A stretch of 63,205 bases of DNA, filler included, from Olpidium bornovanus S191 (taxonomy: Eukaryota; Fungi; Olpidiomycota), in NCBI GenBank assembly GCA_017911155.1. It is 28 parts of 28 records of this genome, joined end to end, with 100 filler letters (N's around TTAATTAATTAA, not from the genome) between each part and the next. Parts side by side here need not be neighbours in the genome. Positions count along the whole stretch, not along the records: positions 58,447 to 61,823 come from JAEFCI010004983.1; 27 more parts are not named here. The stretch is one strand, 5' to 3'. Numbering within the stretch: the first letter of the stretch is position 1; every line of letters begins with the position of its first letter. The translations under genes and the position numbers were made by a program. Shown here in pieces: positions 58,318-61,823 of the stretch. The notes under the pieces are model-generated. The model was not told where the DNA came from. It saw nothing but the letters and a program-made list of their open reading frames with translations, and did no database searches.

Positions 58318-58754
58318 AGAGGAATAATCCGTTCACGTGCGCCATGNNNNNNNNNNNNNNNNNNNNNNNNNNNNNNNNNNNNNNNNNNNNTTAATTAATT
58401 AANNNNNNNNNNNNNNNNNNNNNNNNNNNNNNNNNNNNNNNNNNNNCATGGTAACCCCACGTCTAAACAACAATTATCGGCGGAACCGTCCGTGCAGACC
58501 TGCCCGATAGGAAGAACCGCAGCTGCGGCGCCCCAGACCGCCGTAAGCACATCCGAAAAAGAAGAGCCAACGGGAAAACTCTTCACGCGGCTATTACATT
58601 TGCGGGCGAGGTGCCCATTAGGGCAGTTCTGGTTTACGTACGACCTTTTCTATCTAGTCTAACCCGCCACCCTCTCTGGTTCAGAAACTGGTGGGAGTGG
58701 GGGGGTGTGAGGGGAGAGGAGCTGCGGTTTTATTTTAAAAAAGAAGATTTAAAA

Positions 58755-59690
58755 TTAAGGCCGCGAAGTGCACTCAATGTTATCGCCAGCAAAGTCCAGA
58801 TCAAAATGCATGCGTTGCTGCGTGATTTCTGGATCGGTAGTCAGCATGAAGCCAAGACCGTTAGGCTGCTCGCCGGCCGGCGTAAATGCTTGCATCAACT
58901 GCGTCCGCATAGCCTCGCCGATCACGCGGGGTACTGTGTTGCGGACGAGGGGAGACAATGCGGTCTTGGAAACGAGCTTGGCGGCGGCTTGGGAAAGATT
59001 CCACTTGCGGTCGTCTGTGTATACTTTGACCTCCCCGATATCGCCGACGGCGCTGGTGACCGTCGCAACTAGGTTGCCTTTATCGTTACTGAAAAACACT
59101 CGGCAGTCGACTGCGGCATTCTGTGGTCCTCGACCGAGCCGAAAACATTGTAAACATCGGGGTACGCAAGCAGACCTCCCCCTTTCCGCACGCGACCCCC
59201 CCCCCCTCCCCACCCCCCCGAAATGCTGTGCCGCTTTCCGCACCTGGATCCGGGCAGCCATCGTCCCCGTCATCGATCCGGGCGCAATCGAGGTGTAAAA
59301 CGGGATAACCTCGTAGTTTGCCGAGAGGGTCCCGGAGAAAAAGACGTTCCCATCGGCGTAGCCGTCCTGGAGGGTAACCTTGGTCCGGCTCTCGTCGAAC
59401 TCGAAGTCTCTGAGCATAATGTTGAACAGCCGGTAGTTCCAGAAACCGGCTAGCGAACCTTCGATGTTCTTGAACTTTACGGCGTTGGCGAATTTTTTCA
59501 TCACGGGGAGGAAGCGCTTGGATTCGAAAAACCGCTTGGTTAGAGTAACGCTGAACGCGAGCTCATTGTCGGCGTCGCGGTCTGCGGGGTCCGTCGGCGG
59601 GGAGGCGACCGGTGCTGGCGTCCCCGCGGCCCCGAGGACGGTCAAGACGAAGACGAAGACGACGGCGAGTCCGACGGAGAGGAGCTTCAT
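58755..59690 (-). CDS. Secreted single-domain BPI/LBP (TULIP)-like lipid-binding protein, about 270 aa (exons 59690-59244 and 59120-58755)
   Basis: Signal peptide MKLLSVGLAVVFVFVLTVLGAA. Body follows the BPI N-terminal domain pattern: KNIEGSLAGFWNYRLFNIMLRDFEF..TKVTL, NDKGNLVATVTSAVGDIGEVKV..W, amphipathic helix, FMLTTDPEIT..MHFDL. Confidence 0.7.
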   Translation of the reverse strand: MKLLSVGLAVVFVFVLTVLGAAGTPAPVASPPTDPADRDADNELAFSVTLTKRFFESKRFLPVMKKFANAVKFKNIEGSLAGFWNYRLFNIMLRDFEFDESRTKVTLQDGYADGNVFFSGTLSANYEVIPFYTSIAPGSMTGTMAARIQVRKAAQHFGGVGRGGGSRAERGRSACVPRCLQCFRLGRGPQNAAVDCRVFFSNDKGNLVATVTSAVGDIGEVKVYTDDRKWNLSQAAAKLVSKTALSPLVRNTVPRVIGEAMRTQLMQAFTPAGEQPNGLGFMLTTDPEITQQRMHFDLDFAGDNIECTSRP

Positions 59691-60551
59691 GGCTGCGTTC
59701 GGGCGTCCGGAGCTGCGGAGGGGAAGGAAGAGGGTGGAAGACGAGGGCCGCGTTTCCGCGGCCGGAAGGGCGCGGAAAATGAAAACAGAGCGGAGTGACC
59801 GCGTGTGTTTTGTTGCACTCCCCCCATTTCCCCTTTCCCCCTTTCCCCCTTTTCCCCTTTCCCCCACAACAACAACAACAACACCATCACCACCACCACC
59901 AAACTAACAAGACAGCCCCGTGCAAAATGTGCAGAGGGATTAGAGCCGCCGCGCTCTTCACAGGCTTTGCTGGAAAGCTTGCCGATGAGGATGGAAGTGG
60001 AAAGCGAGCCGCACGAGCGGGCGGACAGTGTGCGCGGCAGCAAACGGGTCCGCGGTAGTTGGGTCGCGGGAAATACCCGGCGCGAAAGTAGTCTGCAAGC
60101 GCGCACTGTGCCCGGTGACATATTCCACGTGGCCGGCTACTTCTGTGGGGATTGGGGAGACCGAAAAAAATTGGAAGCCGAGCCGAGGCCTGAACGCACT
60201 ACGCGCTCCGGCCCCGTCCACACTCGCTGAAAGAACATTTCTCGCAGAACAAGCTGTCATTTTCCGTCGAAAACTATGGTGCGTATCTTGTGGGGGCGCG
60301 TGCACTGTAGCAAGAATTTCCCTCACACGGCTGCGACCGAAGTAGGTTTCGAAAGCACCGTTTTGGACCTCGGACGTGACGTTGGTCCAGAACGCTTGGC
60401 CTCAAAAAATTTTCCTTGACTCCCGCCCAAACATAACGAAAGTATGCCGCCTTAACAATGACAGGCTAGACTAGGATTTTTCGTTGGTCCTATACGTCCG
60501 TTGCACAAATTCCGTACTTTACCTACGCCAACTAAAGCGACGTAATTCACG

Positions 60552-61823
60552 TCACGTGGCACGTCCTTCGTCTTTTTGCCATTGTTCACCGAAGCCGCCA
60601 CCTCCGTCCTCCTCCGTCCACTCCTGCTCGCACGTCTCTTTCGCCGCCTGACGCTTGCGGCCAATAAGTGGAGACTTTGCCTGGGTGAGAGCCTTCCCCG
60701 ACTGGTGGATATGCACCCGCGCGAAGTTGCGAACAGGCTGGGCGTGGTGCACGAGGTCCTTGCGGAAGCGGCGCAGTTCCTCACGGGCGCGTTTCTGGAG
60801 GGCAAGCGGAGGACAACGTTCCTGTTAATACGATAGCGGTGTTTTCCCGCACGTGGGCCGGCCGGGAGGAGAACGCCCAAGCACCTCACCTCATCAGCGA
60901 CTCTCGCCTCCTCCCGAGTCCTCTCTTCCTCCCTCTCCTTCTCCCGTTGCTGCTCGGCAAGCCGCCGCCGCTCCTCTGCCCGGATGTCCGTTTGCAGTGT
61001 CACGTCCTCCGTGGTCGTAAGCTTCTTCGACGACCTCTTAGGCACGAACGGCACATTGGTGGCGAGAGGGGCGACCTGCGCGCTGAACTTGTTTTCCTTC
61101 TCGCGGAGTGCTCGGTCATCCTCCAGCTGCTTCCGCAGTCGCGCCTGATACGCCTCGCCGCGCAAGTCTGTGCGGAAGTGAAATGGCGCCGGCGCCGGCC
61201 TGTCCCGAGCTTTCTTCTTCTCCGGCTTCTTCGTCGCCAGTGCCTGAGCAGCGTGGACAGGGAACGGAAGCCGCCGCGTCAACCCTTCGAGCACCACTTC
61301 AGCAGCGTTCTCCTGTTCCTCAAATATCGGGCGGGGCGAATTCTCACCCCTCCCGATTATTCCCCACCTCCGAAAAGTCCGGCAGCGGGTTCGCCTTGAA
61401 CCTGCGCGCACTCTCCTCCTGCTCCCGTAACCGTCTCAGAAGCTCCTGTTTCTCTTTTAAGCGCGCAGCTCGAACAGACTCCCCCAGCAACGTAAAAGGC
61501 GCAGGCTTGATCGTGCGGTGGGAAATTACGGGCCGGAACGGATTGTCCAAGACCTCGTGCGGCACGGGATTGGCGCGCACAGTGGTGGAGGCCGGGGCAA
61601 TGTCTGATTCGACAAAGTGACGCGGGTCAGGACGCTTGCTGAAGCGCGGGGAAATCGGAGCCGTGAGCTGTGGTTTCGCGATCTTCGGCACGCCGAGATC
61701 TCCATGGCTTTCAAAGATCTGCCGGATAGCGAATGCGCGGGGTGTCCTCACGAACATTAAAAAAATGCTCTGCATACTTTCTCTTGGTTCCTACCAAACT
61801 TCTCGCTGATGCCAAGAGCAAAG
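60552..61823 (-). CDS. TPX2: TPX2-domain microtubule-associated protein, C-terminal part
   Basis: RRFKANPLP, PFHFRTDLRG, FSAQVAP..VPFVPKRSSKKLTTTEDVTLQTDIRAEERR..EKERE, ELRRFRKDLVHHAQPV..QSGKALTQAKSP, matching the TPX2 C-terminal domain. Confidence 0.85.

Follow-up and report, generated by a model that had tools for sequence, protein, structure and literature searches.

The locus at positions 58755-59690 of the window (the whole stretch of 63,205 nucleotides of Olpidium bornovanus S191 DNA that was analysed) raises the question of whether this genome encodes a secreted, single-domain protein of the BPI-like, TULIP type. The original prediction had proposed a complete two-exon gene at this position, and these coordinates match its coding span exactly. 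The gene lies on the minus strand, with a coding span of 59690..58755 that starts from an ATG at 59690 and ends with a stop codon at 58757-58755. Coding exon 1 (59244..59690; 149 codons) is separated from coding exon 2 (58755..59120; 121 codons plus the stop codon) by a phase 0, GT..AG intron of 123 nt at 59121..59243. In assembled contigs of the RNA runs X1 and X3, which stem from two studies, position 59120 is joined directly to position 59244, and the omitted segment has the ends CT..AC on the plus strand. The gene for the secreted protein is thus real, spliced and transcribed, since contigs from two studies omit exactly the 123 bases of the intron. Together, the X1 and X3 contig pieces span 58604-59811. 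On the 5′ side they reach 59718 and 59811, which assigns 59691..59811 to the 5′ UTR; position 59811 is a contig end and no mapped transcription start, and the resulting length of ~121 nt is a minimum. No upstream ATG was read in this leader, and the start codon, which has the good context GCAGCCATGAAG, is the first ATG of the transcript. On the 3′ side, contig 4 of X3 spans 58604-58936, giving a 3′ UTR of at least ~150 nt (58604..58754) with an AATAAA located ~20 nt past the stop codon. The GC3 in the coding frame amounted to 0.81 for exon 1 and 0.65 for exon 2, while the other frames displayed values of 0.43-0.60.

The X1 and X3 RNA contigs differ from the window by single bases at positions 58673, 58717, 59405, 59763 and 60977, which indicates that this RNA derives from another strain or allele. 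The difference at 59405, leading to the conservative exchange F96V, was the only coding one in the 810 coding nucleotides of the secreted-protein gene, as opposed to three differences in ~270 nt of UTR. Two large RNA-seq runs from 2026 with the same species label, X21 and X24, yielded 1 and 0 reads, respectively, on the whole 3.4-kb piece, counts that are uninformative about expression with ~6% of each run being read. This near-blank outcome, which includes the better-expressed TPX2-like neighbour, suggests either that the strain, despite its shared name, is divergent, or that other RNA made up most of these samples. A small share of the stretch also occurs in runs with a second species label. 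Contig totals of the DNA runs amount to 47-49 Mb, which, together with the run labels and the intron style of the piece, fits a free-living soil eukaryote, such as an early-diverging fungus or an amoebozoan.

The intron at 59121-59243 is in frame and free of stop codons, and it contains long runs of G on the coding strand. In particular, the run of C at 59196-59219 on the plus strand corresponds to a coding-strand run of ~24 G that is interrupted twice. As the intron is both in frame and stop-free, a retained-intron mRNA would encode a protein of 311 aa. In such a product, a Gly/Arg-rich insert of 41 aa would fall midway into the putative sheet. The assembled contigs represent the spliced form only, and rare variants get dropped from contigs.

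The piece of the window to which the gene belongs (58447-61823) is GC-rich throughout (~0.49-0.65), and the introns on it are short (95-124 nt), GC-rich and of the GT..AG type. The adjacent gene, also on the minus strand, encodes a TPX2-like microtubule-associated protein; it occupies 60404-61719 and extends upstream past the piece. Three of its coding exons lie on the piece, at 61718-61368, 61243-60890 and 60794-60555, followed by a stop codon at 60554-60552, and its two introns, at 61244-61367 (124 nt) and 60795-60889 (95 nt), are in phase 0. The Pfam matches of this neighbour were weak, with E-values of 7e-4 for TPX2_importin and of 0.034 and 0.095 for two TPX2 matches flanking the last intron. 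Positions 2-34 and 54-76 of the TPX2 model are covered by the latter, which suggests, at the level of the predicted protein, a single TPX2 domain split by that intron. A PAPF...RL+E..R.LRE+E repeat is common to the first two TPX2-like exons, and the transcript contig of at least 2.8 kb implies a protein of ~850 aa. Three microsatellites, (CCCCCTTT)x5.6, (ACA)x6 and (CAC)x6.7, occupy 59821..59901, immediately upstream of where the contigs for the secreted-protein gene end on the 5′ side. Reads seem to be cut at 59820-59907, and the microsatellites could either be promoter-proximal elements or merely mark a site at which assemblies break. On the other side, a short minus-strand ORF at 58447-58586, which begins with MKSFPVGSSFSDVLTAVWGAAAAVL, is cut by the left edge of the piece, and no RNA contig covers it.

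The spliced gene specifies a product of 270 aa. As proposed originally, it starts with a signal peptide, which hydropathy analysis places at residues 1 to ~23 (59622..59690, minus strand). This peptide consists of MK, a hydrophobic core of 17-18 residues (LLSVGLAVVFVFVLTVLG) and AAG, the predicted cleavage site following from the -3/-1 small-residue rule. The core is the sole segment in the whole protein that exceeds a hydropathy of 1.6 over a window of nine residues. It is followed by a Pro/Asp-rich linker of ~19 aa, read from the sequence as residues 24-42 (TPAPVASPPTDPADRDADN; 59565..59621, minus strand). Subtraction of this linker from the mature part of 247 aa leaves a body of ~228 aa, in agreement with the ~230 aa of the original prediction. 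The mature part contains 7.7% Phe and is nearly charge-neutral, with 26 Lys plus Arg and 28 Asp plus Glu residues; both properties would suit a soluble protein whose interior is large and hydrophobic. There are exactly two Cys residues, both encoded by exon 2, one at residue 6 of this exon and the other five residues from the C-terminus. Exon 2 furthermore carries one N-glycosylation sequon (NLS), a long amphipathic helical stretch, and an LTTDPEIT segment that corresponds to the L..DPEIT stretch previously read as the closing strand of a barrel. Neither a membrane anchor nor a C-terminal hydrophobic tail nor a KDEL/HDEL motif was detected in the protein by sequence inspection and hydropathy. 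In addition, a second TULIP domain (PF02886) is absent, as had been anticipated, since the total length is 270 aa and the stop codon at 58755-58757 runs into the 3′ UTR in the transcript contigs. With a signal peptide and no further hydrophobic segment, anchor or retention motif, the product is predicted to enter the secretory pathway as a soluble protein, destined for the extracellular space or for the endosomal or phagosomal lumen.

Sequence relatives were sought with the single exons or with the stop-free read-through ORF (window 58755-59690, minus strand; 311 aa, including 41 intron-coded residues) as queries. The original prediction had pointed to PF01273 as the profile to be searched with HMMER, and no match to it, nor to PF06585 or PF16984, was obtained with hmmscan at E≤10 for the read-through ORF or for either exon. 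At the same threshold, Pfam-A and NCBIfam returned only noise, such as PSF1_C and GP3_package, for the whole ORF and for each exon. A word-index search of 5.8 billion clusters gave nothing at E≤0.01 with the whole ORF, or at E≤10 with residues 40-149. Likewise, the phmmer search of PDB sequences yielded only an irrelevant RPB7 at an E-value of 1.6, two scans of JGI metagenome contigs, made with different peptide patterns, and a search of viral contigs confirmed no relative, and an exact-product look-up of read-through ORFs of 311 and 370 aa found none on record. Rfam gave no match, and a plasmid megablast of the piece 58447-61823 gave none either. The libraries that were searched also lack the source organism's own copy, and a blank therefore means that they hold no relative above ~50 bits; it does not show the absence of a relative in sister species or of paralogues.

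An exhaustive phmmer search of 1.84 billion cluster representatives returned two matches, P0001 with an E-value of 6.5e-5 and P0002 with an E-value of 8e-4. Both were rejected as relatives. They are bacterial-type repeat proteins of 1530 and 1263 aa, containing 10 cadherin domains and DUF5018 plus an ice-binding domain, respectively, and they are artefacts, because the score was added up over 6-8 cadherin or Ig-like repeats of one match of ~60 residues. This match displayed 27-34% identity and extended partly over the intron-coded residues 185-190. As a methodological caution, the sole matches at E<0.001 in this exhaustive search were thus long repeat proteins in which weak copies accumulate.

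Support for a TULIP-type fold came from the ESM-Atlas. With the read-through ORF as the query, the named sets shown among the 100 nearest clusters were JHBP, Grp7_allergen, LBP_BPI_CETP and Fibroin_P25, and no other named family reached 0.84 among these 100. A 'latherin-like' PF01273 cluster set accounted for 12 of the 100 nearest matches, at 0.91. Exon 2 alone, which includes neither the signal peptide nor the intron-coded residues, again retrieved clusters of Grp7_allergen, JHBP, LBP_BPI_CETP and fragments of LBP_BPI_CETP_C, one clan making up eight of the ten best named matches. The top scores, 0.92 for the ORF and 0.91 for exon 2, both belong to the class of 'chance hits or distant relatives' by the method's own calibration, shuffled proteins get to 0.9 in 4-10% of trials, and the two queries overlap in sequence and are dependent on each other. 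The recognition values of 1989 for the ORF and 1979 for exon 2 compare with 2300 as usual for known families, and 159 and 133 shared features, respectively, compare with at least 170 in nine of ten true family members.

Structure prediction with single-sequence AF2 gave no confident fold, with a pLDDT of 36.4 for the read-through ORF and of 34.9 when residues 1-39 were left out. The linker was without regular structure in both models. The two low-confidence models agree in their element order: each starts with a short N-terminal strand, continues with helices and a series of long strands, and then has a long helix (22-37 residues). Only the first model adds a terminal hairpin after this helix. 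A Foldseek comparison of this first, poor model (pLDDT 36.4) with the PDB had its best match at an E-value of 0.024 and a TM-score of 0.13 and was disregarded. A TULIP barrel consists of a short helix, a five-stranded, highly twisted sheet and a long helix around an apolar pocket, and the order of helix, sheet and long helix in BPI barrels was reportedly described by Beamer and colleagues in 1997. The element order in the AF2 models is compatible with a BPI-type barrel, to the extent that models with a pLDDT of ~35 can be read in this way. By eye, the N-terminal part of the protein seems similar to the start of BPI. The BPI family has a conserved intradomain disulfide, Cys135-Cys175 in BPI, and the two Cys residues of the protein are presumably, again judged by eye, not at the corresponding positions. 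The TULIP fold is hence a lead, drawn from language-model features and a rough order of secondary-structure elements. Of the proposal that the locus encodes a TULIP/BPI-like secreted protein, three parts stood firm, namely the predicted gene structure, the signal for secretion and the size of a single domain, and the fold received soft support from the ESM-Atlas neighbours. In our estimation, the chances that the product is a very divergent secreted single-domain TULIP are about even.

Conceivably, the gene could encode a lineage-restricted secreted alpha/beta protein of another fold, for instance a cell-surface or wall-associated protein, a factor of the adhesion or effector-like type, or a wrap that binds ligands, be it Bet v 1/START-like or other. 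We regard this as a serious alternative whose probability falls somewhat short of one half. The TULIP-like neighbours would then mirror gross features only, i.e. a secreted, Phe-rich protein with long strands and amphipathic helices. The negative outcome of every sequence-based family test, the position of the ESM-Atlas scores in the range of chance hits or distant relatives, and the AF2 models without any fold are all in line with this explanation. It is countered by the finding that the named neighbours among the 100 nearest clusters were uniformly TULIP proteins, with none other at or above 0.84, and that these neighbours persisted when the C-terminal half encoded by exon 2 was used alone.

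The remaining explanations concern the origin and the coding nature of the gene. Horizontal acquisition, raised in the original prediction, and a contaminant contig are both very unlikely in our judgement. The blank library searches provide no positive tie to the host lineage, and small parts of the stretch also turn up in soil metagenome runs. Against this, the spliceosomal GT..AG intron of the gene, with 123 nt, falls into the size class of the neighbour's introns (95 and 124 nt), and its GC level and strand match those of the TPX2-like gene next to it on the contig, a cytoskeletal gene of eukaryotes. Moreover, the stretch is present in at least 15 runs of the same organism label from at least five studies, and none of the searches turned up a relative of bacterial, viral or other donor-like kind. 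The idea of horizontal acquisition thus found no support, given the spliceosomal intron, the neighbour-like GC content and intron style, and the lack of bacterial or other relatives in the searches. Even less probable, we believe, is that the transcript, although spliced, is non-coding or open by chance, with an ORF that is not translated. Such a transcript would agree with the lack of a homologue that could show conservation of the ORF, and with the low contig depth of ~5, as compared with 31-68 for the TPX2-like neighbour. However, the spliced frame is open over 270 codons from the first ATG, which has a good context, GC3 is strongly raised in that frame only, and the signal peptide is of the textbook kind. 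The strain differences, one conservative coding change versus three changes in the UTRs, likewise speak for a translated ORF.

If the product is a TULIP, the body of ~228 aa would constitute a single, very divergent domain of this type, with a long helix around which an antiparallel sheet of strong curvature would be folded, the two surrounding a hydrophobic tube. This is the fold class of the N-terminal domain of BPI, the short PLUNCs and latherin, Takeout/JHBP and Der p 7. The long amphipathic helix would be contributed by exon 2 and the curved sheet by both exons, so that an apolar tube is enclosed. The tube would hold one lipid or another hydrophobic ligand, putatively enabling the protein to solubilise, sequester or deliver this ligand in the medium or in a digestive compartment. 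As pure inference, the ligand could be a phospholipid, a sterol or lipid A, and the role, equally speculative, could be lipid scavenging, binding of bacterial envelope lipids as a help in antibacterial action, or a surfactant-like action.

SMP domains reside in the cytoplasm at membrane contact sites, usually in proteins that also carry C2/PH domains or a TM anchor. With the SMP-domain and SPAC32A11.02c-type TULIPs of fungi, the protein perhaps has the superfamily in common. Unlike these proteins, which are cytoplasmic, membrane-anchored or embedded in proteins of 500-1200 aa (PMC5507252), it has a signal peptide that is predicted to be cleaved, and it lacks additional domains. Extracellular TULIPs include the two-domain CETP/BPI/LBP/PLTP proteins and the single-domain short PLUNCs, latherin, Takeout, JHBP and Der p 7, and single-domain variants exist within the CETP/BPI family itself (PMC5507252). 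With ~25 kDa and a secretion signal, the candidate resembles the known single-domain members in size and topology (PMC5507252). The short PLUNCs (BPIFA) and latherin resemble the candidate in having a signal peptide and a single domain of ~200-230 aa without a TULIP-C domain, and latherin-like PF01273 clusters were among its nearest ESM-Atlas neighbours (0.91). They differ in being mammalian and in matching PF01273, whereas the protein described here comes from a microbial eukaryote found in soil and has no match at E≤10; moreover, the conserved disulfide position of the family is not evident in it. Takeout, JHBP, Der p 7 and fibroin p25, the last a homologue of JHBP (PMC5507252), are secreted single TULIP domains of ~220-250 aa, as the candidate would be, and they too have diverged so far from BPI that simple sequence searches fail. 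In both ESM-Atlas searches, they were the most frequent named neighbours. Members of the Takeout/JHBP/Der p 7 group bind small hydrophobic ligands (PMC5507252). In contrast to the candidate, this group is known from arthropods only, and PF06585 and PF16984 are without a match in the protein; nothing suggests a closer kinship than a shared superfamily.

The best comparison as regards the type of organism is with the CETP/BPI homologues of fungi and amoebae, which are secreted or lumenal TULIPs of microbial eukaryotes, as the candidate would be. Full-length secreted homologues have been reported from ascomycetes and across protists (PMC5507252), and the view in the original prediction that such proteins are not a familiar part of mould proteomes was therefore overstated. 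Acanthamoeba has six BPI/LBP genes (PMC4053784), and Dictyostelium needs its BpiC protein to kill Gram-negative bacteria rapidly in the phagosome (PMC8545105). These homologues have two domains, a length of 350-500 aa and a recognisable sequence, whereas the protein studied here has a single domain, a length of 270 aa and no match among the profiles tried. As fungal and amoebal proteins of this kind are documented, and a role has been shown for BpiC, a secreted BPI-like protein is not new in kind. If the candidate is a TULIP, its novelty would be the single-domain form outside animals, together with such divergence.

Should the fold not be confirmed, the gene would represent one more lineage-restricted secreted orphan. 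Tentatively, and with slightly less than an even chance of being right, we propose a new family of secreted single-domain TULIPs from a soil microbial eukaryote, with no detectable relative among 1.84 billion representatives. If this is true, the short-PLUNC/Takeout architecture, so far known from animals, would be extended to a protist or early fungus, and the new family might serve in the handling of prey lipids or environmental lipids. Confirmation of the fold would mean that single-domain extracellular TULIPs are no speciality of animals, and that the TULIP diversity of microbial eukaryotes includes proteins far too divergent for sequence profiles to detect, which would be useful for the cataloguing of lipid-transfer proteins. 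In a phagotroph or a soil fungus, a protein with this fold would furthermore be a candidate for the handling of bacterial envelope lipids.
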